A stretch of DNA of 64,000 nucleotides from Octopus sinensis (Eukaryota). Under the pieces are notes generated by a model that ran no database searches, was not told where the DNA came from, and was given only the letters and a program-made list of their open reading frames with translations. How positions within the stretch are numbered: position 1 is the stretch's first letter; every line of letters begins with the position of its first letter. A program made the translations under genes and the position numbers. This document shows, piece after piece, positions 1 through 64,000 of this stretch. The stretch is from contig NC_043026.1 of NCBI RefSeq assembly GCF_006345805.1, positions 8,432,001 through 8,496,000 of the forward strand, given 5' to 3'.

Positions 1-951
1 GGGTTTCTTTGGTTATGAATTCGTATTTTATTCTATTCTCTTCCCAGTCAATGACGTATATGGTCCGACCAAACATTTCTACACCTATAAGCGTAGAATG
101 TTCCAAATAAGAAACCAAGATTAATCCTAGCTGAATTCTTTTGATTTCCAAACTTAAAGGGTTGATAATAAGAATCATCTTTCGAAATGGGAGGGTGGCG
201 AGGACTGTGTCTTCACTGATTCTAGTAAAATCAGTGACAGAAGATGAGCAACGAACATCGTTTCTGTTGCCGTCTCTTGTTATACAACATATTGTCATAC
301 AGTGGCGGGAATATGTTACAATTCCCCCTTGTATGACAACAATATTGGATATGGGGTTGCTTAAGTCTTCACCAGATTCCTCAATCTTTGCTTCTCTGGT
401 CACAACTGGCTGAAGAGGCCGAAATTTTGTGGTTAGTTTGGTGGTTCAATGGTCTTGTGTTTGTCTTGTAAAACATTTTTGGTTATGTATTGTTCCAGAA
501 AATATTCAAGTTTTCCTAAAATATCAAAGTCTTGACTATGATAATATTTCTTAAAGTCTTTCATCAGAATTTCTATTCTCTGTGTAAAATGTTTTAGAAA
601 AGTATTTTCATCCATTCCAATTTTTTTTAAAAAAGTACATATTTCTTTCCGAGAATTTATCAACAAATCAATTTTTTCGTCATAGGCATTGAATCTTGTA
701 TAAAATATGTGTTTGTCCAAAATATTTCGTCTTCCCATTATTTCCCAGTTTTTAGGGTCTCCTTTATGTTTTTTTTTTGTTGTTGGCTGAGATGAAGATC
801 GTTTCTCGGACATTTCTCTCCTGAACCGTCGTCTCTCTCATATTACACCTTTTATTGTCAACTCCTTCTTCATCCCATTTTGGTGTCGAGTTCCTTAAAG
901 CCCTTTCAGAGGGATAAGTTTCCTTAAAGTATTTTCAGTCTGGTCTTCCAT
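1..951 (-). pseudogene. Multi-propeller family copy 1, 5' part (runs off window); four 1-nt A-run deletions disrupt the frame
   Basis: ATG at 951 gives MEDQTENTLRKLIPLK as in copy 3, preceded by the same acceptor TTTCTTTACAG (959-960). Single A missing versus copies 2/3 near 903, 843, 822 and 437. After the last one the frame reads FRPLQPVVTREAKIEESGEDLSNPISNIVV...FITKET to the window edge. Confidence 0.85.
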
Positions 952-18019: not shown

Positions 18020-21000
18020 ATGGAAGCCCCAAGAGAAAATTCTTTAAGGAAACTTATCCCTCAAATAAGGGCTTTAAGGAACTCAACACCAAAATGGGAT
18101 GAAGAAGGAGTTGAGAAGAAAAGGTGTAAATATGAGAGAGATGATGGTTCAAGGAGAGAAATGTCCAAGAAACGATCTTCATCACAGCCAACAACAAAAC
18201 TAAAAAGACATAACGGAGACCCTAAAAACTGGGAAATAATGGGGAGACGAGATATTTTGGACAAACACATATTCTATACAATACACAATGCCTATGAGGA
18301 CAAAATTAATTTGTTGATAAATTCTCGGAAAGAAATATGTACTTTTTTAAAAAAAATTGGAATGGATGAAAATACTTTTCTAAAACATTTTACACAGAGA
18401 ATAAAAATTCTGACGAAAGACGTTAAAAAAAACGATTACAATCAAGAATTTATTATTTTTGGAAAACTAGAAATGTTCCTGGAACACTATATACAAAGAA
18501 ATATTCTACAAGACAAACACAAAACCATTGATCCACCAAAAATAATCACAAAATTTCGGCAACTTCAACCAGTTGTGACCAGAGAAGCAAATATTGAGGA
18601 ATCTGGAGAAGAATTTGAAGAAATCCCAATAATATCAAATATTGTCATCATAGAGGAGGGAGTGATGACATATTCCCACCATTATAAGATAATAAGTTTA
18701 GTAACAAGAGACAGTGACAGAAATGATATCCATTGTCCATCTTCTGTGACCAGTTTCACCAGAATCAGTGAAGACATGGTTCTGGCAACCCTCCCCTTCC
18801 AAGAAATGATTCTTATTATCAGCCCCAAAACCTTCAAGATCAAAAGGATACAGTTGGGGTTACATATGGTGAGTTACTTGGAAGATTCTACACTTATAGG
18901 TGTAGAAATGTTTGGTAAGATAGTTTACGAATTTGATTGGGAGGATAATACCATTAACTATCAATTTATTACCAAAGAAACACCTACAGATATTGCTGTA
19001 GGGGTCCAGAATATACTTGTAATTACATTCGCCAGCATCAACAGAGTAATCTGTTACAAACTGGATGGCCAACAGTTATGGGAGGTAGAGACCCATTCTC
19101 TGCACCTCCCAAGTAAAATTTCTCTGTACCAACACTATTTCTATGTCCTCCAGGGACAAATAATTTATAGGATTTCAGCTAAAGGTGGTGTGACAAGGAG
19201 GGACATTGGCAGGAAATGCCGCTCTATTTCTGTTGGTAAAGATGCCATTTTGGTAACAGATTATTGCGGCAAACCACATGGTATTCAAATGAATAAAGAC
19301 TTTTGGCCCAAACTGTCATACAACCACCAGCTACATACCCCCAGTTTAAAAGACTATATTGATATTGAGGATTGCTACAACATTACAAATATTCTACCTA
19401 TGTCTACATCTTCTATATTAATAATTTACAAAAACAAGAAAGCTAAATTATTCACTGATAATGGGGAAATAATTAGCCAAAATAATTCAGTTTTCGTTGA
19501 GCTTCCTTCTTTCTGTTGTAGAATAAACGCAAACAGATTCCTGGTATTTTATCATGAAATGAAAGGATTTCAGTATATAACCTGTCCTGAACTAAGAAAA
19601 GGCCCTATAATAAAGGTGCAAACTGGTTACATGAAAATATGTCATATTGTATCAAATAAGTGTTTAGCTGTGACCACCACTGAAAACAAAAGCGAGATCC
19701 ATATCCTATTGATCAACAAAGATAAAGTTGACATTGCAGAAAGAATTTCTCTGGGACATTATAATGTCAGCATTGCTGCAACTCCAATTAATTTTGTAGT
19801 CGTAGATGGAAACGAAAATAAAATGGTATTTTATTCCACATGTGGTGAAAAACTTTTTCAAAAATACCTTCCATTCTATGGCTACCCTCATCACATCTAC
19901 TCTGATAATGTTTATTTCTATGTCCTCTTCAAGAGACACTCTATTCTCAGATGTTACGATCTATATGGACAAATGAAATGGCAGTGGGAACTGCCTTTCC
20001 CTGTTCACCCTCACATTGCTGTTTTCCAAGGAACTCTTTATGTCCCGGACACTCAACTCAACAGGGTTCTTCTTTACAAGTATCAAGACCGGTCGTCTGG
20101 CTGTCGTTTACCCACGAAAAATCCTTACATCAGAAATCTAAATCTACGACTCAAAGAAAAGAAGAATGACCAAAAACTTGTCATTGGTGAAATATGTAAT
20201 CTGTCCAATGGACAGTTGGTGGTGTCTGACATCAACCATGATTGCTTGTTATACATTTCTCAAGAAGGAGACATTGTGTCCAGATTATCTCTGCTGTCTA
20301 CAGCTACAGATATATGTCAATGGGATTCTAATCATATAGGGGTCACATTACCCCTACAGAAACAATTAAGGGTCATCGGAAACCTATCAAAGAGAGTGAG
20401 AAGTATATCATTAAGGCAGCCTTATGTACGGGCGTGTAAGTTGGGTGAATGTGAAATTGTTTGTTATTGTGATAAACCATCACAATTAGATATTTTAGCC
20501 ATCAATAATTATAATCAAGTTGAAGTAATTAAGACAATTAATATCCCTGTTTTTGTGAAATCATTATCAATAGAGAAGAAAACAGAAAAGCTATTAATTG
20601 TTACTAAGGAAAAAGCTTTTCAGTACAACACTAGAATAGGTGGTGGTGGTCATGGCGGTCGTCAAATGGTCCCCAGTGTTTTAATGTCCCAAGTGAAACG
20701 TCCCCTCAGTCTCCAAGGTGGATCTATTGACCAAACGTCTGTTTATCTGATAGACAGAAGCCGTATGTTTGCCATAAACGATCATAATTTAGTGGTTAAT
20801 GATCTCGTTACAAATAATCAACTTAATTATTATATCGACCTGGTGGATGTATTTTCCAGAAACATTTCTGTCAGTGAAATGTTGTCTTCCACTTTATATC
20901 TACAGGACCTGACAGTTTCTGATAAAGCCAGACATATTCCTCTCCCTAAACATTTGGGAGACAAAGGACCAGTGTGGATTAGATCTTTGGTTCTTACTGA

Positions 21001-37131: not shown

Positions 37132-40100
37132 ATGGAAGACCAGACTGAAAATACTTTAAGAAAACTTATCCCTCTGAAAAGGGCTTTAAGTTATTCAACA
37201 CCAAAATGGGATGAAGAAGGAGTTGACAATAAAAGAGGTAAATATGAGAGAGACAACGGTTCAAGGAGAGAAATATCCGAGAAACGATCTTCATTTCAGC
37301 CAACAACAAAACAAAAAAGACATAAAGGAGACGATAAAAACTGGGAAATAATTGGAAGACGAAATATTTTGGACAAACACATATTTTATACAAGATTCAA
37401 TGCCTATGAGGACAAAATTAATTTGTTGATAAATTCTCGGAAAGAAATATGTACTTTTTTAAAAAAAATTGGAATGGATGAAAATACTTTTCTAAAACAT
37501 TTTACACAGAGAATAGAAATTCTGACGAAAGACATTAAAAAAAACGATTACAATCAAGAATTTATTATTTTTGGAAAACTAGAATCGTTCCTGGAACACT
37601 ATATACAAAGAAATATTCTACAAGACAAACACAAAACCATTGATCCACCAAAAATAACCACAAAATTTCGGCCTCTTCAACAAGTTGTGACCAGAGAAGC
37701 AGATATTGAGGAATCTGGAGAAGAATTTGAAGAAATCCCAATAATATCCAATATTGTCATCATAGAGGAGGGAGTGATGACATATTCCCACCATTGCAAG
37801 ACAATAAGTGTAGTAACAAGAGACGGTGACAGAATTGATGTCCATTGTCCATCTTCTGTGACCAGTTTCACAAGAATCAGTGAAGACATGGTTCTGGCAA
37901 CCCTCCCCTTCCAAGAAATGATTCTTATTATCAGCCCCCAAACCTTCAAGATCAAAAGGATAAAGTTGGGGTTATATATGGTGAGTTACTTGGAAGATTC
38001 TACACTTATAGGTGTAGAAATGTTTGGTAAGATAGTTTACCAATTTGATTGGGAGGATAATACCATAAACTATCAATTTATTACCAAAGAAACACCTACA
38101 GATATTGCTGTAGGGGTCCAGAATATACTTGTAATTACATTCGCCAGCATCAACAGAGTAATCTGTTACAAACTGGATGGCCAACAGTTATGGGAGGTAG
38201 AGACCCATTCTCTGCACCTCCCTAGTAAAATCTCTCTGTACCAACACTATTTCTATGTCCTCCAGGGACAAATAATTTATAGGATTTCAGCTAAAGGTGG
38301 TGTAACAAGGAGGGACATTGGCAGGAAATGCCGCTCTATTTCTGTTGGTAAAGATACCATTTTGGTTACAGATTATTGCGGCAAACCACATGGTATTCAA
38401 ATGAATAAAGACTTTTGGCCCAAACTGTCATACAACCACCAGCTACATACCCCCAGTTTAAAAGACTATATTGATATTGAGGATTGCTACAACATTACTA
38501 ATATTCTACCTATGTCTACATCTTCTATATTAATAATTTACAAAAACAAGAAAGCTAAATTATTCACTGATAACGGGGAAATAATTAACCAAAATAATTC
38601 AGTTTTCTTTGAGCTTCCTTCTTTCTGTTGTAGAATAAACGCAAACAGATTCCTGGTATTTTATCGCGAAAAGAAAGGGTTTCAGTATATCACCTGTCCT
38701 GAACTAAGAAAAGGCCCTTTAATAAAGGTGAAAACTGGTTACATGAAAATATGTCATATCGTATCTAATAAGTGTTTAGCTGTGACCACCACTGAAAACA
38801 AAAGCGAGGTCCATATCCTCTTGATCAACGAAGATAAAGTTGACATTGCAGAAAGAATTTCTCTGGGACATCATAATGTCAGCATTGCTGCAACTCCAAT
38901 TAATTTTGTAATCGTAGATGGAAACGAAAATAAAATGGTATTTTATTCCACATGTGGTGAAGAACTTTTTCAAAAATACCTTCCATTCTATGGCTACCCT
39001 CATCACATCTACTCTGATAATGTTTATTTCTATGTCCTCTTCAGGAGACACTCTATTCTCAGATGTTACGATCTATATGGACAAATGAAATGGCAGTGGG
39101 AACTGCCTTTCCCTGTTCACCCTCACATTGCTGTTTTCCAAGGAACTCTTTATGTCCCGGACACTCAACTCAACAGGGTTCTTCTTTACAAGTATCAAGA
39201 CCGGTCTTCTGGCTGTTGTTTACCCACCAAAAATCCTTATATCAGAAATCTAAATCTACGACTCAAAGAAAAGGAGAATGACCAAAAACTTGTCATTGGC
39301 AAAATATGTAATCTGTCCAATGGACAGTTGGTGGTGTCCGATATCAAGCATGATTGCTTGTTGTACATTTCTAAGGAAGGAGACATTGTGTCCAGATTAT
39401 CTCTGCCGTCTACAGCTACAGATATATGTCGATGGGATTCTAATCATATAGGTGTCACATTACCCCTACAGAAACAATTAAGGGTCATCGGAAACCTATC
39501 AAAGACAGTGAGAAGTGTATCATTAAGGCAGCCTTATGTACGGGTGTGTAAGATGGGTGAAGGTGAAATTGTTTGTTATTGTGATAAACCATCACATTTA
39601 GATATTTTAGCCATCAATTATTATAATCAAGTTGAAGTAATTAAGACAATTAATATCCCTGTTTTTGTGAAATCATTATCAATAGACAAGAAAACAGAAA
39701 AGCTATTAATTGTTACTAGGGGAAATTCTTTTCAGTACAACATTACAATAGGTGGTGGTGGTCATGGCAGTCGTCAGATGGTCCCCACTGTTTTAATGCC
39801 CCGAGTGAAACGTCCCCTCAATCTCCAAGGTGGATCTATTGACCAAACGTTTGTTTATCTGATAGACAGAAGCCGTATGTTTGCTATAAATGGTCATAAT
39901 TTGGTGGTTAATGATCTCGTTACAAATAATCAACTTAATTATTATATCGACCTGGTGGATGTATTTTCCAGAAACATTTCTCTCAGCGAAATGTTGTCTT
40001 CCACTTTATATCTACAGGACCTGACAGTTTCTGATAAAGCCAGACATATTCCTCCCCATCAATATTTGGGAGACGAAGCACCAGTGAGGATTAAATCTTT

Positions 40101-43340: not shown

Positions 43341-46300
43341 ATCATCATCATCATCGTCGTTTAACGTCCGTTCTCCATGCTAGCATGGGTTGGACGGTTC
43401 GACCGGGGTTCTGGGAAGCCAGAAGGCTGCACCAGGCTCCAGTCTAATTTGGCAATGTTTCTACAGCTGGATGCCCTTCCTAACGCCAACCACTCCGTGA
43501 GTGTAGTGGGTGCTTTTTACGTGCCACCTGCACAGGTGCCAGGCGGGGCTGGCAACGGCCACGGTCAGATTGGTGTATTTTATGTGCCACCGGCACGGAA
43601 GCCAGTCGAGGCGGTGCTGGCATCGGCCACGAGTCGGATAGTGCTTTTTACGTACCACCAGACCAGGGATCCTGGCTGGTTCAATTCGATTTCGATTTCG
43701 CTTGCCCCAACATGTCTTCACAAGCAAAGGGGGTTGGCAAGGGTGCCTGTCGTACGGTCGCATTGGAGTATTTTACGTGCCACGGCCACGAGTCGGATAG
43801 TGCTTTTTACGTACCACCAGACCAGGGATCCTGGCTGGTTCAATTCGATTTCGATTTCGCTTGCCCCAACATGTCTTCACAAGCAAAGGGGGTTGGCATG
43901 GGTGCCTGTCGTACGGTCGCATTGGAGTATTTTACGTGCCACGGCCCCGAGTCGGATAGTGCTTTTTACGTACCACCAGGCCAGGGATCCTGGCTGGTTC
44001 AATTCGGTTTCGATTTCGCTTGCCCCAACATGTCTTCGCAAGCATGGGGGGTTGGGATGGGTGTCTGTCGTCGGATGAGGTTCTATATCGACTTCGCTTG
44101 CCTCAACCGGTCTTTGTGTCCAAGGGAGGAAAGGCATTCATAAGTGGGCTGGGCTCACTTGTCCTGCCTGGTCTTCTCACGTATAGAATATTTCCAAAGG
44201 TCTCGGTCTCTGGTCATTTCCTCAGTGAGGCCTAAAGTTCGAAGGTCGTGCTTCACCACCTCGTCCCAGGTTCTCCTGGGTCTACCTCTTCCACGGGTTC
44301 CCTCAACTGCTAGGGATTGGCACTTTCTCACACACCTATCTTCATCCATTCTCGCCACATGACCATACCAGCGCAATCGTCTCTCTTGCACACCACAACT
44401 GATGCTTCTTAGGTACAACATTTCTCTCAAGGTGCTAACGCTCTGTCGAGTATGTACACTGACATTACACATCCATCGGAGCATACTGGCTTCATTCCTC
44501 ACGAGCTTACGCATGTCCTCAGCAGTCACAGCCCATGTTTCGCTGCCATGTAGCATGGCTGTTCGTACACACGCATCATACAGTCTGCCTTTTACTCTGA
44601 GCGAGAGGCCTTTAGTCACCAGCAGAGGTAAGAGCTCCCTAAACTTTGCCCAGGCTATTCTTATTCTAGCAGTTACACTTTCAGCGCACCCACCCCCACT
44701 ACTGACTTGGTCACCTAGATAACGGAAGCTATCAACTACTTCTAGTTTTTCCCCCTGGAAAGTGACGGAAGTTGTTTTCTGCAGATTTTCGGAGGTTAAT
44801 GCTCCCGAGCATCTGCCACATACAAAAACTATCTTCCCAGTTAGCCTACCTTTGACATTGCTGCACCTCTTATGTGTCCATAGCTTACACTGGGTACATC
44901 TTATAGAGTTTCTACCTACACCTTTTCTACAGATCGAGCAGGGCCATCTTCCTGAAGATATTTGTGGATTGTCTACCTTTCTACTTATTAGTACTTTGGT
45001 TTTAGCTAGGTTGACTCTAAGGCCCCTTGATTCTAAACCCTCCTTCCACACCTGGAACTTCTCCTCCAGTTCTGATAGTGACTCAGCAATAAGAGCAAGG
45101 TCGTCAGCATAGAGGAGCTCCCAGGGACAGCCTGTCTTGAATTCCTCCGTAATTGCCTGGAGTACTATGATAAATAGGAGGGGGCTGAGTACTGAACCCT
45201 GGTGGACCCCAACCTCTACTTTGAATTCTTCTGTGTACATGTTGCCAACCCTAACCTTACTTACGGCATCTCTGTACATGGCTTGCACAGTCCTCACCAG
45301 CCATTCATCTATCCCTAGTTTCCTCATTGACCACCAGATAAGGGATCGGGGGACCCTATCAAAAGCTTTCTCCATGTCAACGAAAGCCAGGTACAGGGGC
45401 TTATCTTTGGCTAGGTATTTCTCCTGCAGCTGCCTTACCAGGAATATAGCATCAGTGGTACTTTTTCCTGGCACGAACCCAAACTGCATCTCATCTAAAC
45501 TAACTCTCTCTCTAATTAGTTGGGCTATGACCCTCTCCGTAACCTTCATTACTTGATCCAACAGCTTGATACCTCTGTAATTATTTGTATCTAGGGCATC
45601 ACCTTTACCTTTGTAGCAGTTGACTAGTATGCTGCTGCACCAGTCATTGGGTATGACTCCTTCGTGTATCACCTGGTTGACTATACGGGTGACTAGGTTA
45701 TAGATATTTTGAGCATCTCTGCAGTAATTCCTGATGGGCCTGGGGCTTTCCCTGTCTTCATGCTTCTAATTGCCTTAGCTACCACGGAACTATCAACTCG
45801 GATAGCTGGTCCCTCTGTAGGGTCAACATTCGGCAGACTCTCTTTATCCCATTCATTTTCCTCATTCAGTAACCTTTCATAGTGGCGTCTCCAAGCTTCT
45901 CTCTTTGCATCCTCATTTAGCGCAAGTGAACCATCCTCCATGCGAACACATTTCTCTCCTACCACATCACGATTCTCTCTCACACACTGTCTTGCAACAC
46001 GAAATACCTCAAGTCTTTCATCCTCACGGCGCAGGACATTGGCAAATTTTCTCTTATCTGCTTCCCCTCTGGCTAGATAGACCTGTCTCCTAGCTTCCCT
46101 TCTGGCAGTCTGATACCCTTCCCTGCTACCACCGTTCTTCCAGGCCTTCCAAGCCTGTTTCTTTTGTCTAATAGCCCTGTCAACAATATTGTTCCACCAC
46201 CACGTTATTTTGGGTCTTAAGGGGACTTTGCACCAGCCACAGATCTGGTCAGCGGCTTTCAGCAGGTTGTCCCTCAGAAACGTCCAGTTGTCTTCTACCC

Positions 46301-46465
46301 CATGTGTAGCTATACCCCCTTCCACTTCGTCAAAGGCTTCAAGTAACATATCTCTAAATCTCTGTCCATTCGCAGGGGCTTTAAGCTTCCAGACCCTTCT
46401 TCTCCATGTTGGTCGTCTTCTAGTCGCCCTCTTAGTCCTGATCCTAAAGTCACTAACTACCAGTC
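43341..46465 (-). mobile_element. Young 5'-truncated RTE LINE (end of endonuclease domain, RT, Cys-rich C-terminus, 3'-UTR)
   Basis: ORF 44155-45672 with FVDMEKAFDRV, GVHQGSVLSP, LLYADDL; one frameshift near 45700; TSD TATTTC at 43335-40 and 46466-71; (ATC)n tail. Confidence 0.95.
43626..44065. repeat. 159-bp tandem repeat (about 2.7 units) in the RTE 3'-UTR
   Basis: GCC(A/C)CGAGTCGGATAGTGCTTTTTACG at 43626, 43785 and 43944. Confidence 0.9.
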
Positions 46466-46859
46466 TATTTCTCATATAAAATTTGAAGGAGAGCTAAAAA
46501 ACCTTTTATGAATGAAATTGGCTGTATAAGGTCTCATTTCATGCTAGAAAGAGCCACCAAAGCCTTCACATTTTTATTTTATCACAAATAAAAAACAATT
46601 TACAAAGCATCCATGTCAAATATTGTCCTTTAGATGACCTAACATCATGCTAGAAATGTGTATCGTTTTTCATTGAAAAAGTGAAGGACACTTTAAGAAG
46701 CAACTCTAAAAATATTGTCCTGTGGCGGTTTAAGTGTAAAATATTATAAAAGTATGCATCTATGAGTTTTATGTGTTTAAAAAACATAGCAAAGACATCT
46801 GTGTATATGTAGGTATATATAAATATACAAGTGTATAAATGTTCTTCGATGATGTATAT

Positions 46860-48874: not shown

Positions 48875-50831
48875 ACTATAATTTATTAGTTTCATTTGCA
48901 TATTCTTAGTTTATGCATGTGTATGCAAATATAGTATTGGTATATCCCATTTATGTTCATTAAAAATTAAATAAAGAATTTTGATATGTACAAATATCTA
49001 TTTAACCCCACCACTGTATATTCAAGCTTCTTTCAGTTTCCGTCTACCATATCCACTCACGGGGATCTGGTTGGACTAAGGCTACAATATAAGACACTTG
49101 GCCAAAGTGCCTCTCAGTGGGACTGAACCTGGGACCGTGTAGTTGGGACGCAGGCTTCTTATCACACAGCCACACTAGTGTCTATATGTATATATAAGCA
49201 AACATCAGTCTATATAGATATACATACATATATCTATCTATCTGTGTTTATCTACATATATATATATCAATCTGTCTATCTATCTATGTATCTATATATA
49301 TATATATATGTCTACATATATAAATATATATATTTTTATAGAAAAACAAAAGACAAAACCGGGTGTATGATCAACAAGCAAGTGTATTTGTTTGATACTT
49401 GGAAAACTAGTAAAAGTGCTTCATGTTTCGAGCCTCCGCACTTCAACAGACAGGAATAAGACAAAATACATCAAGAAAGAATGAAAACACCGTTTAGAGT
49501 TCAGAGCTCCATCATCGTGTGTGTTTGTGTGTTTGCATGTGTGTGTGTGTGTGTATGTATGTATGTGTGTGTGTGTATGTATTTGATGTTGCTTATAATA
49601 AATTGTATTAAAGGGTACATCTCCAATCTCTTGTGTTCATTTGAATGATTATAAACCATGGTTTATATGTAAACCTATCATTTTCCCTAAACATATTAGG
49701 TATTTAACCAGTAACTCCTTGAATGGTGCCATCCCTTAACTAAGGCGAAATCCACCTCTAATCGAACTTATGAATATATGAAAACATCCAAGATTGTATT
49801 CTGATAGGAAAAAGGAAAACACCCAAAGGTGCTGCTTCACCTTTTTAATCAGTGAACGGAAATAAAAATAGAATAAATAAATTTATTTTTAATAAATTCA
49901 AAATAACACAATGATTGTGATGGTGATGATGATGATGATGAAGATGATAATGCTGTTGTTGTTGTTGTTGTTGGTGGTGGTGTAAGTATTTGCATTCAGA
50001 CTGAAGAAAGTGAAATTTATACTGAACAATGCATATTCATTAGAAAAACCAGTTTCTAAGGGTTTTAAAAGCAAAACCCTTGAGATGACCCCGAATCTGT
50101 AAATGAATGTGTTATCAGTTTGCAAAGAGGTTTCAATTATATTTATTTTTGTCTAAAGGCAGCTTAGCCATTGTGACACAAAAGCAGATTGTTAGATGTT
50201 GAGAGGGAGGGAGGGGAAAGGAAATCAAAAGAACAACAAGGATCAAATGATTTCAGAGGGATTATTTGAAGAGAGAGAGATATATATATATAGAGAGAGA
50301 GAGAGAGTGAGTGAAAGAGAAAAAGAGAGAGAAAGTGAGAGAGAGAGGAAAGAATGAGGTGGTGTACAGGAAAACAAAAACAATACACAAAGCATTATAT
50401 TTTTAATAAATGACAGCTGAAACTAATGAATAAGATGATGATGATGATGAGAGTGGGGTTTTTTGTTGTGGTGGCGGTGGTGGTGGGGATGTGAATACTT
50501 GCATTTTGGGGACCAATGTGTAAACAAAACCCTTGAGTTGTTGAGTAAATGTAAATGAATGCTTTATCAGTTGGAAACAACTGGAATTATTTCAAAATGG
50601 ATTTTGAGATCTTAAGAGGGAGGAAGTGAAAATCAAATCCAAATAACAACAGGAGTGTCTTTGTGATAAGAGGCTTGCTTCCCAACTACATGGTTCCAGG
50701 TTCAGTCCCACCGTGTGGCACCTTAAGCAAGTGTCATCTACTATAACCAAAGCTTTGTGAGTGGCTTTGGTAGACAGAAACAGAAAGAAGTCCATCATGA
50801 ACATATGAGTGTGTGTTTGTGTATATATGTA

Positions 50832-50879
<48 letters not shown>

Positions 50880-50880
<1 letters not shown>

Positions 50881-51746
50881 ATATTTCGGAATGGTCATTT
50901 TGCCAGTTTAGCCAATAAAAACACACGCACTATGTATTTGGTGTTATTTTGCTTCAGTGATATTTATTTTTTACATTAATCTTAATCTTATTTCGGCCAA
51001 AGTTCTTTCGTCACACTCCTGTGACCGCATCAGTGGTCCTTTGTTTTCTTCTCACTTACTTGTGTCTCTCCTTACTAACCGTCAGCCATTTTGTATTTCT
51101 ATTGTATGTCTTCATTTGCGCATGCTTATATCTCTATGTGCGTCTATGTTTATTTAGTGTGTGTGGGGGGGGGATGCCTGTAATATTTGTATCTTCTGGT
51201 TATATACATTCTTGTAATTTGCATTTTGTTTTTGTTGTTGTTGCTTTTGTTCTAATTTTGTTCATGTGTTTACATCCACCCATTATTATCATTACATATG
51301 CTTGTATGTATGTATAACAACAATATTAGTAATAATAATAATAAATCTAATCGAAAAAAAAAATCTAATCGAAAAAAAAAATATATATATATATACATAT
51401 ACATACATATATACATAGATATATATATATATAGTTATTCATTTCTATTTGTTTATTTATCTGTGTATTTATTATGTTTTCGGGATCCACTATTGTCATA
51501 TGTTGTGGTGTGCGCTATTGCTCCATTCTAGTTTTCTATTCAGGCTAGGTTTATTTTCTATTATATGTGTAGCTTCTGTAATTTGTCTAATTGTTGCATC
51601 TGTTCTATGTGTGGACAATATCTTAATCTCTATGTTATTGATTGATCCCCCGTGTTCCTGTTAGGCGTGTTGGTACAGAATCGATGAGCTTTTTCGATTA
51701 GATTTATTATTATTATTACTAATATTGTTGTTATACATACATACAA
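50880..51746 (-). mobile_element. Penelope-like remnant: GIY-YIG tail, 3' region and degenerate hammerhead
   Basis: Minus strand 51690 to 51490 reads RKSSSILYQHA*QEHGG...IKILS...RQITEATHI..KPSLNRKLEW; CTGATGC-GGTCAC-loop-GTGAC-GAAA near 51035 to 51005. Confidence 0.65.
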
Positions 51747-51816
51747 AAGGAAGAAAACAAAATCCACAGAAAAGAATATATTCAACAGAAAAAGATAATA
51801 ATTCTATATTCATAAA

Positions 51817-54800
51817 ATGGAGAAGATTAATGAAGAAAACAAAATGTTGGCTCTCAATCCTGCCACAGTCTGTGATACAACAGCAATTTATAAGGAAACT
51901 ACACCAATTCTTCCCCAAATATTACATACACAAAACACAAAGAAAACAGAAGAACAGGAAAGAAAAGACACAAAGAAATCTAAAGAACAGGAAAAGTCCA
52001 TGTTACCAAGTTTCCTTCATATTGTGACATGTTACCGAACACTAATCAAAACAGACCACATCAATACATTTATAGATTATGTAAAGGATAAATGTAATCA
52101 CATGCACTCTCTGGGTTTAAATGGATCTTGAATTTTACGTAATATCAAACGTAAAATGCCAAGATTTCTGGAAATTGCAAGACAAAATAATGATTTTGTT
52201 CACCAAAACTTTGATTGGTTTCAACAAAGACTCTTTGACATTTATGTCACCTGTAACCCATACAACCACAAGACCATTGAACCACCAAAAGTAACCACAA
52301 AATTTCGGCCTCTTCAGCCAGTTGTGACCAGAGAAGCAAACATTGAGGAATCTGGAGAAGAATTTGAAGAAATCCCAATAATATCAAATATTGTCATCAT
52401 AGAGGAGGGAGTGATGACATATTCCCACCATTGCAAGATAATAAGTTTAGTAACAAGAGACAGTGACAGAATTGATGTCCATTGTCCATCTTCTGTGACC
52501 AGTTTCACCAGAATCAGTGAAGACATGGTTCTGGCAACCCTCCCCTTCCAAGAAATGATTCTTATTATCAGCACCAAAACCTTTAAGATCAAAAGGATAA
52601 AGTTGGGGTTATATATGGTGAGTTACTTGGAAGATTCTACACTTATAGGTGTAGAAATGTTTGGTGAAACAGTTTACCAATTTGATTGGGAGGATAATAC
52701 CATAAACTATCAATTTATTACCAAAGAAACACCTACAGATATTGCTGTAGGGGTCCAGAATATACTTGTAATTACATTCGCCAGCATCAACAGAGTAATC
52801 TGTTACAAACTGGATGGTCAACAGTTATGGGAGGTAGAGACCCATTCTCTGCACCTCCCAAGTAAAATCTCTCTGTACCAAAATTATTTCTATGTCCTCC
52901 AGGGACAAATAATTTATAGGATTTCAGCTAAAGGTGGTGTAACAAGGAGGGACATTGGCAGGAAATGCCGCTCTATTTCTGTTGGTAAAGATACCATTTT
53001 GGTAACAGATTATTGCGGCAAACCACATGGTATTCAAATGAATAAAGACTTTTGGCCCAAACTGTCATACAACCACCAGCTACATACCCCCAGTTTAAAA
53101 GACTATATTGATATTGAGGATTGCTACAACATTACTAATATTCTACCTATGTCTACATCTTCTATATTAATAATTTACAAAAACAAGAAAGCTAAATTAT
53201 TCACTGATAACGGGGAAATAATTAACCAAAATAATTCAGTTTTCTTTGAGCTTCCTTCTTTCTGTTGTAGAATAAACGCAAACAGATTCCTGGTATTTTA
53301 TTGTGAAATGAAAGGGTTTCAGTATATCACCTGTCCTGAACTAAGAAAAGGCCCTTTAATGAAAGTCCATACTGATTACATGAAAATATGTCATATTGTA
53401 TCAAATAAGTGTCTGGCTGTGACCACCACTGAAAACAAAAGCGAGGTCCATATCCTCTTGATCAACGAAGATAAAGTTGACATTGCAGAAAGAATTTCTC
53501 TGGGACATTATAATGTCAGCATTGCTGCAACTCCAATTAATTTTGTAGTCGTAGATGGAAACGAAAATAAAATGGTATTTTATTCCACATGTGGTGAAGA
53601 ACTTTTTCAAAAATACCTTCCATTCTATGGCTACCCTCATCACATCTACTCTGATAATGTTTATTTCTATGTCCTCTTCAAGAGACACTCTATTCTCAGA
53701 TGTTACGATCAATATGGAGAAATGAAATGGCAGTGGGAACTGCCTTTCCCTGTTCACCCTCACATTGCTGTTTTCCAAGGAACTCTTTATGTCCCGGACG
53801 CTCAACTCAACAGGGTTCTTCTTTACAAGTATCAAGGCCGGTTGTCTGGCTGTCGTTTACACACAAAAAATCCTTACATCAGAAATCTAAATCTACGACT
53901 CAAAGAAAAGGAGAAAGACCAAAAACTTGTCATTGGCGAAATATGTAATCTGTCCAATGGACAGTTGGTGGTGTCTGACATCAAGCATGATTACTTGTTG
54001 TACATTTCTGAAGAAGGAGACATTGTGTCCAGATTATCTCTGCCGTCTACAGCCACAGATATATATCGATGGGATTCAAATCATATAGGGGTCACATTAC
54101 CCCTACAGAAACAATTAAGGGTCATCGGAAACCTATCAAAGACAGTGAGAAGTGTATCATTAAGGCAGCCTTATGTACAGGTGTGTAAGATGGGTGAAGG
54201 TGAAATTGTTTGTTATTGTGATAAACCATCACATTTAGATATTTTAGCCATCAATTATTATAATCAAGTTGAAGTAATTAAGACAATTAATATCCCTGTG
54301 TTTGTGAAATCATTATCAATAGACACAAAAACAGAAAAGCTATTAATTGTTACTAAGGAAAAAGCTTTCCAGTACAACACTAGAATAGGTGGTGGTGGTC
54401 ATGTCGGTCGTCAGATGGTCCCCAGTGTTTTAATGTCCCAAGTGAAACGTCCCCTCAGTCTCCAAGGTGGATCTATTGACCAAACATCTGTTTATCTGAT
54501 AGACAGAAGCCGTATGTTTGCCATAAACGATCAGAATTTGTTGGTCAATGATCTCGTTACTAATAATCAACTTAATTATTACATCGACCTGGTGGATGTA
54601 TTTCCCAGAAACATTTCTCTCAGTGAAATGTTGTCTTCCACTTTATATCTACAGGACCTGACAGTTTCTGATAAAGCCAGACATATTCGTCTCCCTAAAC
54701 ATTTGGGAGACAAAGAACCAGTGGTAATTAATCATTTGTTAATTACTGAAAATAACTTGATTGCAGGATTTGACTGGGAGAATGGAAACATCAAGATATT

Positions 54801-56387
54801 CACATTTGATGGTCACCTTTTGGATTCAATCAAAGTGAATTTTTATACATGTAATAAAATGTGTCGATGGCAGTCAAACACACTGGTCATTATAAATTTG
54901 GATTGTTTTTATGCTGAATCCGAACTGTTGACATTAAAAGTGGAATTTCCATTGTCGTTGGTAATTTACCAAACAAGAAGAAAATATCATTGTGTGGCTT
55001 CTTTATCAAATAATCAACTGGTTTGTAGTAATTTGGGAGATGCATGTCATTTGTATTTTGTTGATATTGATGAAATACATTCGAGTGCGAAGGAAATAAA
55101 ACAAATAGACATACCTGAACCATTAATAGAGAGAACAGAAGATGGAAATTATTTTGATGTCATCCATGATATTAAGGTTACTGCTGAAGATGTCATCATT
55201 GTCTTAAATGAAAGATTCATAATTTTCTTCAACAGTGATGGTCAATATTTACATCCAATCAGACACTACATCGATTTTGATTATTTTGTTGCAAGCAAGA
55301 TGACAACTGATGACAGTTTTTTGTACATTTATGGTGAGTGGAAGAAATATTTGGGTCTGTTTAGATATAAAAACATTTTGTGTTGGACCCAAAAAGGGGA
55401 ATACAAGAGAATATTTTTAAATCAAAGAATTTATAAAGATAAAGTAGAATTCTGCAATATAGAATGTAAAGGACCAAGGTTTGTTGGAAGCCCCACAGCG
55501 GGATGGAGAAAGAATGAATTGTATGTTGAAGGGTTGTTTATGGTGAATCGAGACAGCTTCCCGGTTGCTCGTTTACAAACAGACGAATGTCCTGTTCAAG
55601 TGAAAGATTTTGATGTCTCTGAGGAAGGAAAGACAGTTGTGTGTGAAAAGCCAATAATGGAAATTTTAAAATATTTGATAGAGATGGGGAGTTGCTATGT
55701 CATAGAGATGCTGGAAGTTTAGTTGGTGGTGTGTGTTTTACACAAGAATCACGCATAATGGCCACGGTTCCTAAAAGGAAAGAAATATTTCAACTGAATG
55801 GAGAAGATTTGCAGGCATCTCAAGTTTGGTCGAGTCTCATCCCTTATGGTATAATATGGAGAAAAGTGGCGGGTATTTACTGGTGTGTACATAATGAATT
55901 GATTGAATGTCATTGCATAAAGATTGATGGGGACCAAGTGAACATTCTGGAATCTGTGTTGTTATCAAATCTTGATTCTGGTCTTCGTTTCCCTTCCATT
56001 ACATCTGAAACGAACAAGGAAATATTCAGTAATGAATTAATTAATAAATTGGAATACAGAGAAGGAGATGGAGATGGGGGAAGAAAAAGAAGAGGTAAAT
56101 CAGGTGAAATAATTGGTAAAGATAGATTAAAGGTGAGATGTGGTAATTACATAGCAGAGATTAATAATTCAGGAATTGATAAAATATCAGTGAGGAGACT
56201 TCCATATAGGACAGCAATGGTCCCTTTTTCCATTCCTGCATTCGAGGAACCTGTTCATTATGATTATAGTGACATTAGGGACCGGAACAGTAAACTAATT
56301 AAGTTAGATGAGAATGTGAGTGTGTTGGTGTTTCGAGAAAGTGTCACAATCTTCAGGTGGACTTCCAATAATTCAGTGTCAATTTGA
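51817..56387 (+). pseudogene. Multi-propeller family copy 4: divergent N-terminal module, in-frame TGA (52129-31), A-run frameshift (about 55648), truncated early in propeller 6
   Basis: ORFs 51817-52131 and 52156-55722 share a frame; GAAAAGCC versus GAAAAAGCC in the other copies; homology ends at GTGTCACA (56348). Confidence 0.85.
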
Positions 56388-56668: not shown

Positions 56669-57106
56669 TATAAGTATATATATAAAAATATACACACACA
56701 TAAGGTTACAGATAATTAATTATATATGCTGGAATATACATATACATCCACATCTATGGGTACATATACAATGTTCATTACATTACCAATATTATTATTA
56801 TTATTATTATTAATATTAATATTAGATTATGAGCATTCTGCTATTCACAATACATAGTAAATGAAAAATACAACTTAGAATATAGTATACTATAATATAA
56901 TATAATATAATATATAGACAGATGCTTATGAAAGATGCAAGCACATTCATTCAACAAATAATGTCAGTATATTCATATATTATACAGTCAAAATCGAAAC
57001 TTCAGTCTTATTCTGCATACATATATATATATATATATATATATACACAGGTAACAAACACATGCATATACATATACATACATACGCATAAACACACACA
57101 CACACA

Positions 57107-57299
57107 CTCTTTTACTTGTTTCAGCCATTTGACTGCGGCCATGCTGGAGCACCGCCTTTAGCCGATCAAATCGACATATTCTTTTTAAGCCCAATACTTA
57201 TTCTATCGGCCTCTTTTGCCGAACCGCTAAGTGACGGGGACATAAACACACCAGCATCGGTTGTCAAGCAATGCTAGGGGGACAAACACAGACACACAA

Positions 57300-57330
<31 letters not shown>

Positions 57331-57490
57331 CATATATACGACAGGCTTCTTTCAGTTTCCGTCTACCAAATCCACTCACAAGGCTTTGGTCGGCCTGGGG
57401 CTATAGCAGAAGACACTTGCCCAAGATGTCACGCAGTGGGACTGAACCCGGAACCATGTGGTTGGTAAGCAAGCTACTTACCACACAGCC
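57107..57490 (-). mobile_element. SINE family A
   Basis: Reverse complement of the consensus. Confidence 0.85.
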
Positions 57491-57875
57491 AGGCGCTTTG
57501 CTGCAAAAACAAAGGTATTTACCTCTATCATAAGAGACCCTTTGTATGCAGATGATTGTGAGCTAGTAGCACACACAGAGATTGATATGCAACACATTTT
57601 GAATGCATTCTCTGATGCTTGCACTGCCGTAGGATTGACAGTCAATCTCAAGAAAACTGTTGTCATGCATCAACCTGCCCCTGGTAAGCAGTATAGTGTA
57701 CCAAACATCTATGTGTATGGTAAACGACTTGATGTAGTTGATCAGTTTGTCTACCTGGGAAGCACTATTAATAGCTATAGCAATTTGGATGATGAAATTC
57801 TATATAGAATTAGGAAAGCAAGTGTTGCTTTTGGAAGGTTAGAAAAGCGCCTCTGGACTCGGCGAGACATATGCA
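57491..57875 (+). mobile_element. Internal RT fragment of an RTE/BovB-like LINE, distinct from the other RTEs here
   Basis: RRFAAKTKV...LYADDC.LVAHTE.DMQ...FSDAC...GLTVNLKKT.VMHQPAPG...YLGS. Confidence 0.8.
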
Positions 57876-60516: not shown

Positions 60517-60750
60517 TTATTTGTCAAAATAAAAGAAAGCAAAAGATTGACGTCCAGGAATAATTCCAAAAACCATCAAAGAATTGTCTGAAACATCCAA
60601 ACCAAGAACTTCAAACACTTCATTATCATCCCCTCTGAGGAGTAAATATTTTGGATTATCTTTTAATCCCTGGATTTCATCATATTCAGATGTTTCCTCT
60701 TCAATATGTCGAGGTATTTCGTAAATATTGTTCTCTAAATCTGTTATATA
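60517..60750 (-). pseudogene. C-terminal stub of a further family copy (last ~78 codons, stop and 3' flank)
   Basis: YITDLENNIYEIPRHIEEETSE...LLLRGDDNEV.EVLGLDVS.NSLMVFGIIPGRQSFAFFYFDK*, closer to copy 3 than to copy 5. Confidence 0.9.
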
Positions 60751-60942
60751 AACACATATACATATACTGTATATAAATATACACACACACACAAAGAGAG
60801 TGTGTTGAGGAATGTTACAACACTAAGTGTTAGTGTGTAGAATGCAATGTATGCGATGCAGGTTCGATTCCCAGGCAAAGCCATTTACAACAACAACAAT
60901 AAGAAGAAGAAGAAGATTGAAGCTTAATATTTCTGAAAATAT

Positions 60943-63900
60943 TTATTTGTCAAAATAAAAAAAAGCAAAAGATTGACGTCCAGGAATAATTCCAAAAACC
61001 ATCAAAGAATTGTCTGAAACATCCAAACCAAGAACTTTGTAAACTTCATTATCGATACCTCCCAGGAGCAAATATTGTTGAATATCTTCAGATGTTTGAT
61101 GTTCAATATGTCCAGGTATTTGGTAAATATTGTTATATCTGTCTACTATATACACATATTCACCTTGTGTAGTTAGATAATGTCTATGGATGTTGTTGTA
61201 TAGATATCTTGGTAGTTTTATACTTCTGACCAAATGTTCACTAAACCAAATGACATCATAGGCATAACCACTCCAGTATCTCTCCCGCTCTTCCTTCACA
61301 ACGACAATATCTCCACCAGATGTCACTACTATATCCAACACCACCTCTATCTCCTCCTTCTTTCTCAGCCAAGAGCACACTTTATGAATGTATTTACATA
61401 CCTTTCCATCAATAGCAATTACATCTACATAATAGGAAGACCAGCTTCTACATTCAGTCATGTCTTCAATATAAGGACCACCACCACCACACACGAGTTG
61501 ATTGTCGTTGTATTTATAAATCCTGTTGTAGAATTTCTTAGTTTTGATGGTTTTTAAACGACGGAGATCCCTGTTGAAGAACATCAGTTCTTCACCAAAG
61601 GCGACAATGAAACATTCCTCTTTCCACCAACATATGTCCAGTGGTAGTTGTGGTAGTTGTTTATGTTGAAGTATGTCCACTGTTGTTGTTGTTCTGATTA
61701 ATGTGACACTTTCTCGAAACATCAACACACTCACATTCTCATCTAACTTAATTAGTTTACTATTGTAATCTCTACTGTCTTCGATATCATAATTAACAGG
61801 TTCAGTGCATGTAGGAATGGAAAAAGGGACCATTGCTGTCCGATATGGAAGTCTCCTCACTGATATTTCATCAATTCCTGGCTTACTCTCCGCTATGTAA
61901 TTACCACATCTCACCTTTAATCTACTTTTACCAATTATTTCACCTGATTTACCTCTTTCCACTTCATCTCCGCCACTGTATTCCAATTTATTAATTAATT
62001 CATTACTGAATATTTCCTTATTCGTTTCAGATGTAATGGAAGGGAAACGAAGACCAGAATCAAGATTTGATAATGACACAGATTCCAGAATGTTCACTTG
62101 GTCCCCATCAATCTTTATGCAATGACATTCAATCAATTCAATATGTGCACACCAGTAAATATTTCCCACTTTTCTCCATATCACACCATAAGGTACTTGA
62201 CTTTCCCAAACTTTATATTTCCCCAAATTTTCTTGCTTCAGTTGAAATATTTCTCGTCTGTTAGGGACCGTGACCATTATGCCTCTTCCATGTGTAAAAC
62301 ACACACCACCAACTAAACTTCCTAGATCTCTGTGGCATAGCAATTCCCCATCTCTATCAAACATTTTAACATTTCCATTATTGGCTTTTTCACACACAAC
62401 TGTCTTTCCTTCATCAGAGATGTCAATATCTTTCACCTGAACAAGACATTCGTCTGTTTGTAAATGACAAACAGGGAATTTTTCCCGATTAAGCTGAAAC
62501 AAACCTTCAACATACAATTTATCTTTGTTGTGGCTCCCAGCAAAACGTGGACCATTACAGTTTATACTTGTGAAATCTATTTTATCTTTATAAATTCTAC
62601 TATTTATAAATATTCTGTTGTATTCTCCTGTCTGTGTCAAACAGACTAAGCTGTTATAGCCAGTGAAATCACCATAACGATCCCACCATCCATAAATGTA
62701 CAAATAACTGTCATCAATTGTCATGTTGTTGTATTTAATATCATCATAAGCCATGTAGTGTCTAACTGAATGCAAATACTGACCACCACTGTTGAAGAAT
62801 ATTATGAATCTTCTATTGCTGACAATGATGACACCATTAGCAGTAACTATAATATTACAGATGTAATTAATAAGTCCACGTCTGTCTTTCGTTAATGTCT
62901 CAGGTATGCCTATTTGTTTTATTATATTCACGGTTGAATGTTTTTCGTCTATAACGATAACATACAAATTACATTTATCTCTATATTTACTACACAACAG
63001 TTGATTGTTTGATAAAGAAGCAATACATTTATATTCATTTCTTGTCAGGTAGGTTACCGACGACAATGGGAACCCAACTTTTAAAGTCAACAATTGGGAC
63101 TTAGCACCATAAGTTGTAATGACCAGTGTGTTTCTCTGCCAACGACACATATTAATAGGAAAAACATTCAATTTGATAGAGTCCACAAGTTGACCGTCAA
63201 ATGTGAATATCTTAATGTTTTTATTATTCCAGTCATATGACGCTATCAGGTTATTTTCAATAACACACAAACGGCGAATGTACACTGGTTTTTGGTCTCC
63301 AAAACCTGAAGGGACAACGACATGTCTAGCTTTGTCAGAAACTGTCAGGTCCTGTAGATATAAAGTGGAAGACAACATTTCACTGACAGAAATGTTTCTG
63401 GAAAATACATCCACCAGGTCGATATAATAATTAAGTTGATTATTTGTAACGAGATCATTAACTAACAAATTATGATTGTTTATGGCAAACATACGGCTTC
63501 TGTCTATCAGATAAACAAATATTTTATCAATAGATCCACCGCAGAGATTGAGGGGACGTTTCACTTGGGACATTAAAACACTGGGGACCATCTTACTACT
63601 ACTATAACCACCACCACAGATACTAGTGTTGTAATGAAAGGCTATTTTCCTAGTAACAATTAATAATTTTCGTGTTTCATTTTCTATTGCTAATGATTTC
63701 ACAAACACAGGGATATTAATTGTCTTAAGTACTTCGACTTGATTATAATAATTGATGGCTAAAATATCTAAATGTGATGGATTATCACAGTAACAAACAA
63801 TTTCACATTCACCCATCTTACACACCCGTACATAAGGCTGCCTTAATGATACACTTCTCACTGTCTTTGATAGGTTTCCGATGACCCTTAATTGTTTCTG

Positions 63901-64000
63901 TAGGGGTAATGTGACCCCTATATGATTAGAACCCCACTAACATATATCTGTGGCTGTAGACAGCAGAGATAATCTGGGCACAATGTCTCCTTCCTCAGAA
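60943..64000 (-). pseudogene. Multi-propeller family copy 5, 3' part (propellers 3-6), in-frame TAG at 63937-63939; continues off window
   Basis: ORF 60943-63861 ends in SFAFFYFDK*; the upstream frame reads SEEGDIVPRLSLLSTATDIC*WGSNHIG, where the other copies have Q, R or R. Confidence 0.8.

Follow-up and report, generated by a model that had tools for sequence, protein, structure and literature searches.

Probable re-assortment of old N-terminal modules at a conserved hinge in an octopod family of multi-propeller proteins

A stretch of 64,000 nucleotides from Octopus sinensis (NCBI RefSeq assembly GCF_006345805.1, contig NC_043026.1, positions 8,432,001 to 8,496,000 of the forward strand; hereafter the window, position 1 being its first letter) was found to contain five copies and one extra C-terminal fragment of a family of very large proteins (tblastn with the intact copy 3 as query). 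In copy 4 an N-terminal module that is strongly diverged from those of copies 1–3 is followed by a near-identical body, and the two are joined in a short conserved hinge. It is likely that old N-terminal modules have been re-assorted on near-identical bodies at this hinge by mosaicism within the gene family, copy 4 being a decayed member with a type-B module and a type-I body (B+I; types defined below).

The frame and coordinates assigned to copy 4 in a first-pass annotation, made by a model from the letters alone, were correct (ATG at 51817; TGA at 52129–52131; HKTIEPPK from 52267, codon 151), and the jump of identity that it placed at HKTIEPPK is real. DNA identity of copy 4 to copy 3 (200-column windows) was 57%, 48% and 58% before the hinge, 96–100% for about 1 kb after it, and 93–99% thereafter; from HKTIEPPK onward copy 4 is 96–100% identical to copies 2 and 3 over the first ~1 kb, and in the 5' DNA alignment it can be aligned to copies 1–3 only from about 52262–52267 on. 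The module DNA of copy 4 is 94–98% identical to that of two related loci, L002 and L001, and ~50% identical to all type-A copies (200-column windows). The first body block is near-identical to those of the type-A copies 2 and 3 and of type-C loci, and 73–85% identical to type-II bodies; between copies 3 and 4 it gave a synonymous divergence (dS) of 0.05 and a ratio of nonsynonymous to synonymous divergence (dN/dS) of 0.25. A 69-bp stretch at the junction (52262–52330) is 85–96% identical to copies of every module type, and mean pairwise identity rises at the hinge from 55–70% to 87–92%. The hinge, which carries a conserved KFRPL motif, was predicted by AlphaFold 2 (AF2) as coil of low confidence (predicted local distance difference test, pLDDT).

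Module types were assigned among 39 relatives from a protein search with full-length copy 3. Type A: leader MEDQTEN..., tail ...FLEHYIQRNILQDK; type B: leader MEKINEEN..., tail ...DWFQQRLFDIYVTCNPYN; type C: type-A leader (residues 1–46), a middle section of its own, and the type-B tail. Type A is carried by copies 1–3 of the window and type B by copy 4. With the copy 4 module as query, an O. vulgaris protein was obtained that has the same module with arginine at the stop site; among the intact full-length genes with type B are P0016 (1801 aa, single exon at L011) and P0019 (1798 aa), and the type was found also in O. bimaculoides (P0037) and O. sinensis (P0038, P0044). The concern of the first-pass annotation that no other copy might have this N-terminus is removed by the recurrence of type B, in intact genes among others, in three Octopus species.

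The two N-termini had been described as remote homologs with about 11 identities in 71 positions, almost without gaps, which is a fair count; when these 71 residues of copy 4 (DHIN...PYN) are aligned globally with copy 3, the best solution has 14 identities and three short gaps. Pairwise similarity of the two modules is marginal (versus shuffles: local p about 0.015, global p about 0.0035), and hhalign with small profiles (A versus B, 8 versus 3 sequences) gave E = 0.029. Such scores are insufficient for homology, which was decided by richer profiles and a bridging paralog; whole-module comparisons of A with C and of B with C are inflated by the shared leader and tail and were rerun on the cores only. 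Richer profiles (hhalign): A versus C, P = 2.8e-5; A versus B, C and Argonauta modules together, P = 7e-5, collinear over 66 columns; B versus C, P = 4e-26; B versus Argonauta, P = 3e-14. The module of the paralog P0053 matches type A (p ~9e-12), type B (~8e-11) and type C (~5e-9) in one register throughout, and few small gaps suffice for a multiple alignment across all module types. By these profile comparisons and by P0053 the homology of the module types is secured, and they represent at least three old versions of one helical N-terminal domain. The motif LxDIYxxxNP before the hinge is common to types B and C, the Argonauta modules and the single-copy paralogs; as B and C resemble the latter two, type A is probably the derived form.

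Structure prediction, proposed in the first-pass annotation for both N-terminal types, gave matching helices. The type-B model was that of the P0016 module (95% identical to that of copy 4) and has helices of ~20 residues at 57–76, 79–98, 104–123 and 127–146 (codons 57–146 of copy 4 correspond to nt 51985–52254), with the hinge at residue 151; in the type-A model (copy 3) residues 1–87 are disordered, helices are placed at 88–112, 117–136 and 143–162, and the hinge lies at residue 167. The predicted helices of A and B agree in position and length. The Foldseek part of the same proposal yielded no known fold for type B.

Two body types were distinguished over the first ~1.1 kb: type I (...EEFEEIPIIS...) and type II (...EDLSNPISNI...). 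All four combinations considered in the four-gamete criterion (A+I, A+II, B+I and B+II) were found, each three times or more when the copies of the window are counted with the predicted proteins. Copy 4 (B+I) and L002 (B+II) are 94–98% identical in the module and 73–85% in the first 1.1 kb of the body; relative to copy 3 (A+I) the relation is reversed. This part of the copy 4 body is 96–100% identical to that of type-A and type-C copies. Body dS between genes of different module type is 0.05–0.085, and their module DNA is unalignable; conservation at the protein level alone cannot explain the contrast, because body dS is only 0.05 between copies 3 and 4. Body phylogeny and module type, whose comparison had also been proposed, are discordant: in a tree built from the initial 300 residues of the body, the three module types are interleaved within clades of 94–98% identity.

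In maximum chi-square triplet tests (chi2 75–395, permutation p ≤ 0.003) adjacent blocks differed in their nearest relatives. The ratio of informative sites changed from 224:2 to 15:218 at 52319–52337 (triplet test, permutation p ≤ 0.003); breakpoints of three further triplets (queries L011, L005 and L002) were located at 52324–52341, and that of a fourth within 52339–52386. Type-B sub-variants do not follow body type, and the codons at the junction vary between genes, so more than one exchange is suggested.

Upstream of the module a second boundary was found. Far-upstream sequence of O. vulgaris type-B loci is homologous to that of type-A loci and is followed by divergent sequence up to the hinge; the variable unit is therefore a cassette that comprises the module and its proximal 5' flank and has a boundary on either side. 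Type-C loci have the upstream region and the first 138 nt of the coding sequence in common with type A.

A further pair of genes was obtained from Argonauta hians (L009, BAAFZT010000225, and L010, BAAFZT010000002; intronless paralogs of 1914 and 1913 aa). Their first ~480–610 nt are ~52% identical and the following 4.4 kb are 96% identical; the N-modules are unalignable and the downstream flanks are 86–90% identical. In this pair, from a second genus, module and body are thus discordant as well, which makes it an independent case. A long array of a ~63-bp satellite is contained in the regions upstream of these genes.

The favoured mechanism is as follows. Paralogs, most of them on one small chromosome, would swap blocks by non-allelic homologous recombination (NAHR) or gene conversion; the exchange we infer from discordant ancestry. 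The exchange tracts would resolve within the ~70-bp hinge island common to all copies because the module DNA is too diverged to align, which would block exchange through the modules. The outcome is found in the genes: near-identical bodies in genes with long-diverged N-modules, every combination of module and body being present. As to function, our best guess is a binding platform, cytosolic and built of several propellers, in which the helical N-module might serve self-association or partner choice.

Several other arrangements at the hinge were observed. A solo type-B module lies at L001 10001–10506 (O. vulgaris OX597841, about 22.7 Mb; annotated as P0001, 166 aa); its homology to copy 4 ends at the hinge (equivalent to 52321 of the window) and is followed by unrelated AT-rich DNA, with no body within 10 kb. 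In P0069 and P0054 (O. vulgaris, O. sinensis) the body from SKFRPL onward is joined to other N-termini, that of P0069 being composed of MIB2-like ankyrin repeats and a RING finger; these could be true domain fusions or gene-model artefacts. In P0032 (O. bimaculoides, 1662 aa) the basic leader runs straight into the hinge (…EINRRQ followed directly by QKTIEAQK…) and the helical core is absent, either by natural deletion of the module at the hinge or by a predicted intron.

The following points weigh against re-assortment at the hinge or limit it. The hinge is not the sole block boundary: the body is mosaic at ~nt 1700, ~nt 2500 and elsewhere (L002 regains ~95–99% identity beyond ~nt 1700; L005 falls to 70–80% beyond ~nt 2500; L006 has a patch of 79%), and further A/C and B/C breakpoints lie inside the N-module. 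Thus, of the first-pass claim that modules were swapped at a fixed hinge, the swapping stands (re-assortment, breakpoints at 52319–52341, the Argonauta pair) and the hinge has become one of several boundaries. The shared position of the breakpoints is partly built in, as A/B divergence ends where I/II divergence starts; identical breakpoints are therefore no proof of independent events, and a minimum of one exchange each in Octopus and Argonauta would be enough. The exchange may have been by gene conversion or by reciprocal crossover. The N-module models are of low confidence, with pLDDT 55–66 in type A and 62 overall in type B, and the type-B model (pLDDT 62) gave no Foldseek match in PDB with E below 1. 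The dN/dS ratio was 0.6–0.9 for type-A modules, 1.3–2.8 for type-B modules, with the values above 1 based on few substitutions, and 0.2–0.4 for the first propeller; the N-module is less constrained than the propellers. The sample, 11 related loci and predicted proteins, is short of the full family, and several of its gene models are visibly chimeric. L002, L003 and L004 (O. vulgaris, O. sinensis) show five to six frame switches per gene versus the window copies, which may be due to widespread pseudogenisation or to assembly indel errors; as a consequence, public gene models of the family are often fragments, and many of the current octopus models are fragmentary or chimeric. Finally, the stop and the homopolymer frameshift of copy 4 could be sequencing errors, which its missing flanks and C-terminus are not.

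The best surviving alternative is an adaptive one, in which the N-modules are alternative signalling or effector domains and selection re-assorts them onto propeller sensors, as in an NLR-like modular receptor of a combinatorial innate-immune or allorecognition repertoire. The family is lineage-specific, large, pseudogene-rich and clustered on one chromosome; module and body are re-assorted; dN/dS of the N-module (0.6–2.8) exceeds that of the first propeller (0.2–0.4); the protein is apparently soluble and cytosolic; and some gene models have other N-termini at the hinge (P0069, MIB2-like ankyrin repeats and RING) or no module (P0032). We nevertheless consider this alternative unlikely: NACHT, NB-ARC and known effector folds were looked for and not found, the raised dN/dS is equally compatible with relaxed constraint, P0069 may be a gene-model fusion, and mosaicism extends over the gene beyond the hinge, so that neutral gene conversion bounded by divergence explains the pattern without selection. 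The effector or coiled-coil character assigned to the N-module in the first-pass annotation was not borne out, since no match to a known effector, death-fold, TIR or CC domain was obtained (Pfam, Foldseek), and an effector role is speculation; its comparison with NLRs holds for evolutionary modularity and fails for NACHT/NB-ARC and for any link of the family to NLRs. Slightly less likely still is a class of cephalopod cytosolic receptors free of an NB domain, with propeller sensor arrays, alternative helical modules for signalling or assembly and the hinge as a selected recombination joint from which combinatorial diversity would arise, i.e., an octopod analogue of NLR/STAND repertoires.

Very rapid divergence of the copy 4 N-module in place, under positive selection or relaxed constraint and with no recombination, would agree with a dN/dS above that of the body; it is highly improbable in view of a body dS of 0.05 between copies 3 and 4 next to unalignable module DNA (~50%), of the B module of L002 (98% identical) on a body of 73–85% identity, of the presence of all four A/B and I/II combinations, and of the age of type B, which is found in O. 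bimaculoides and has B-like counterparts in Argonauta. Hardly any weight is given to the view that copy 4 is 5'-truncated and has no real module, the upstream open reading frame (ORF) being unrelated or non-coding and its similarity to copy 3 due to chance: the in-frame stop at 52129, the marginal pairwise similarity (p about 0.015) and the true decay of copy 4 speak for it, and against it stand a homology set by profile comparisons and the bridging paralog and the many genes, from three species, in which the same 150-codon module is uninterrupted and runs on into a full-length body. An assembly mis-join near 52200–52350 that made a chimeric gene is equally hard to credit: arrays of highly similar paralogs mis-assemble easily and the change of identity is abrupt, but the junction lies within a hinge common to all copies, and the same B+I junction is present in the independent O. 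vulgaris assembly (OX597841, L011; contiguous from −71 through 4.6 kb, 94% identical to copy 4, with an intact 1801-aa ORF), which also settles the doubt on this point in the first-pass annotation. Re-assortment of modules and bodies by gene-family mosaicism is thus retained as the preferred explanation. An intron at the hinge and the use of another first exon were considered and rejected; the ORF is contiguous here and in the single-exon loci L011, L009 and L010.

Copy 4 itself is a decayed pseudogene fragment and not an example of a working gene; it combines a stop, a frameshift and a truncated 5' flank and 3' end. At the position of its TGA the codon is CGA in L002 and CGT in L001; predicted full-module type-B proteins have R at this site, with Q in P0019 and P0039 and C or F in divergent members. 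Homology to every other copy stops at 56356, ~256 C-terminal codons being absent. Upstream, the only sequence common to copy 4 and the O. vulgaris type-B loci is the 71-bp flank (blastn of 51746–51826: 98.8% versus L002, 95% versus L001; homology to L011 also begins at 51746). This proximal flank of type B differs from the pyrimidine-tract/CAG flank of type A. Next to it lies a 57-bp inverted repeat with arms 100% complementary and 331 nt apart, and the end of the right arm (51746) is the start of type-B locus homology; the repeat may be a MITE-like (miniature inverted-repeat transposable element) or foldback element, or it may be the scar of a rearrangement in which the native promoter region was lost. 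No flank-level ortholog of copy 4 was found among the fetched O. vulgaris and O. sinensis loci, only dispersed repeats matching outside 51746–56356.

The full-length protein is predicted as an intronless product of ~1800 aa composed of a disordered basic leader, a helical module of ~100 aa, a disordered hinge and tandem beta-propellers. The AF2 body model covers residues 1–640 and contains beta domains at aa 203–430 and 455–640; the first (pLDDT 82–92) has 23 predicted strands (207–423), about six four-stranded blades' worth. Foldseek matched the body model to tandem beta-propellers (E about 1e-14), generic ones such as IFT-A, UTP and LRP6. Self-BLAST gave no internal repeats in copy 3 from which propellers could be counted. 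No Pfam domain was found above threshold (copies 2–4, P0016, P0053, P0059, P0050). NHL matches were sub-threshold: E 0.03–0.4 to TRIM71, TRIM2, TRIM3 and Brat in a family-profile search of PDB sequences, which otherwise returned designed helical bundles only; Pfam NHL in P0059, 18.5 bits (cut-off 20). No signal peptide or transmembrane segment was found by hydropathy.

The family is undescribed and restricted to Octopoda; about 40–50 members are predicted, all of them from Octopus species and Argonauta. Protein searches gave relatives in O. vulgaris, O. sinensis, O. bimaculoides and Argonauta hians only. Only 29 matches came from an exhaustive HMMER scan that covered 1.84e9 representative proteins, 9 of the 10 looked-up matches being from Octopus and the weakest of all being a negligible match in Kitasatospora; the sole non-octopod match covers 37 residues (E = 2.7e-4), and a horizontal origin was rejected on this account. 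A full-text literature search gave nothing relevant on expansion of an octopus NHL gene family. In O. vulgaris a single chromosome of 29 Mb, OX597841, carries most of the members. Two groups, P0053/P0075/P0076 (1674–1680 aa; one gene per Octopus species in three species, forming one 90%-identity cluster) and P0059/P0082, likewise a conserved gene present once per Octopus species, are 45% and 30% identical to copy 3, respectively, lie on large chromosomes and are likely founder paralogs outside the expanding cluster.

Coordinates of the family copies and of the parts of copy 4 are collected in Table 1.

Table 1. Features of the propeller-protein family in the window (positions of the window).
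Feature	Position	Strand	Remarks
Copy 1	951..2	minus	frameshifted, runs off window; type-II body
Copy 1, type-A N-terminal module	465..951	minus	tblastn, DNA alignment
Copy 2, ORF	18020–22381	+	1453 aa, 3' end truncated
Copy 2, type-A N-terminal module	18020..18517	+	tblastn, DNA alignment
Copy 3	37132–42591	+	1819 aa; sole intact full-length copy in window
Copy 3, type-A N-terminal module	37132..37629	+	comparison partner of copy 4 in the first-pass annotation
Copy 3, hinge island	37630..37698	+	blastn 52262–52330 versus 37625–37693, 91%
Stretch of 445 bp between perfect 57-bp inverted-repeat arms	51302..51746	.	arms 51302–51358 and 51690–51746
Copy 4, type-B-specific 5' flank	51746..51816	+	71 bp
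Copy 4	51817 to about 56450	+	decayed; long ORF 52156–55722
Copy 4, type-B N-terminal module	51817..52266	+	150 codons
Copy 4, in-frame TGA in module	52129..52131	+	codon 105
Copy 4, conserved hinge island HKTIEPPKVTTKFRPLQPVVTRE	52267..52335	+	predicted disordered; junction of module and body lineages
Copy 4, first body block, type I, first beta-propeller	52336..53400	+	identity windows, AF2, Foldseek
Copy 4, rest of body, further propellers	53401..56356	+	tblastn, blastn, indel list
Copy 4, 1-bp deletion in A-run	55645	+	versus copy 3 and L003; frameshift, ORF end 55722; frame change also in tblastn
Extra C-terminal family fragment	60756..60520	minus	tblastn
Copy 5	63999..60946	minus	partial

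The window is AT-rich and gene-poor, and its protein matches are all to octopuses. In the 5' DNA alignment ~600 bp of upstream sequence is common to copies 2 and 3, and copy 1 shares ~160 bp of it. A pyrimidine tract with CAG (…tttctttacag ATTCACT ATG) stands right before the start codon of the type-A copies (37122–37131, 18010–18019 and the equivalent in copy 1), which suggests a candidate acceptor of an intron in the 5' untranslated region. ORFs of non-LTR (long terminal repeat) retrotransposons are present at 44155–46475 (minus) and 34301–34906 (minus); a reverse-transcriptase domain was recognised with E = 2.6e-32, and the PHD-finger match is weak and sub-threshold. The insertion downstream of copy 3 breaks a flank that is contiguous in O. 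vulgaris L011, and a related C-terminal retrotransposon fragment lies upstream of copy 3. A mobile-element origin of the family gene was rejected: no reverse transcriptase or transposase is found inside the unit, and multi-kb flanks are shared as in segmental duplicates. A 159-bp tandem repeat (43624–44071; 2.8 copies, 96% identity) yields a spurious 233-aa ORF (43377–44078). A dispersed repeat resembling a short interspersed element (~150–400 bp; 57106–57491, ~49026–49173, 50650–50856 and many more sites) occurs several times in each locus, in the window as well as in O. vulgaris and O. sinensis, and explains most flank matches.

What is documented here is an octopod-specific, uncharacterised family of multi-propeller proteins that are very large and encoded without introns. 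It is also a clean natural example of how gene conversion or NAHR would homogenise most of a gene and leave a diverged domain cassette, which persists and is re-assorted at a linker that is itself conserved. Roles in recognition or scaffolding that are specific to the cephalopod lineage can be proposed for the family, and its three module types offer experiments a ready comparison set. Since the evolutionary process is well known, the significance in general is moderate; new is the example in an undescribed family.

Combinatorial domain association is known for the fungal NLR-like STAND proteins of the HET-E/NWD type, composed of an N-terminal effector, NACHT or NB-ARC and WD40, ankyrin or TPR repeats (PMC4986451). 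Like these and the plant CC/TIR-NLRs, the octopus family has a variable N-module, C-terminal repeats or propellers, lineage-specific expansion, N-terminal re-assortment and recombination-driven repeat evolution, and the C-terminal repeat or sensor region has its counterpart in the beta-propellers (AF2, Foldseek). Pfam gave no match to a central NACHT/NB-ARC or other NTPase domain in copy 3, P0016, P0053, P0059 and P0050, nor any significant match to a recognised class of N-terminal effector or adaptor (CARD, PYD, TIR, CC/RPW8, HET, HeLo and similar) on either module type. The octopus modules, moreover, are homologs of one another and not unrelated domain families, and an immune or allorecognition role is only conjectured. 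The analogy with NLRs is restricted to evolutionary modularity because neither a NACHT domain nor a known effector fold was found.

With the TRIM-NHL proteins (TRIM2/3/71, Brat) the family shares the order of a helical or coiled-coil region followed by a beta-propeller, and sub-threshold NHL repeats are the only sequence matches of the body to solved structures. RING and B-box gave no Pfam match in copies 2–4, P0016, P0053, P0059 and P0050, RING being present only in the fusion-like P0069; the octopus proteins differ also in having several tandem propellers, not one.

KIR and Ly49, RHD/RHCE and the opsins are multigene families in which non-allelic gene conversion or unequal recombination has made the paralogs mosaic and let them evolve in concert, the tracts ending at the edges of divergence. 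The octopus family resembles them in block-wise discordant ancestry with four module and body combinations, in near-identical tracts, synonymous sites included, beside unalignable ones, in sharp switch points within a conserved island, and in its many decayed copies. It differs from them in being undescribed and octopod-restricted, in that the unit escaping homogenisation is a whole domain with its proximal 5' flank as a cassette, and in that the same domain boundary behaves so in two genera.

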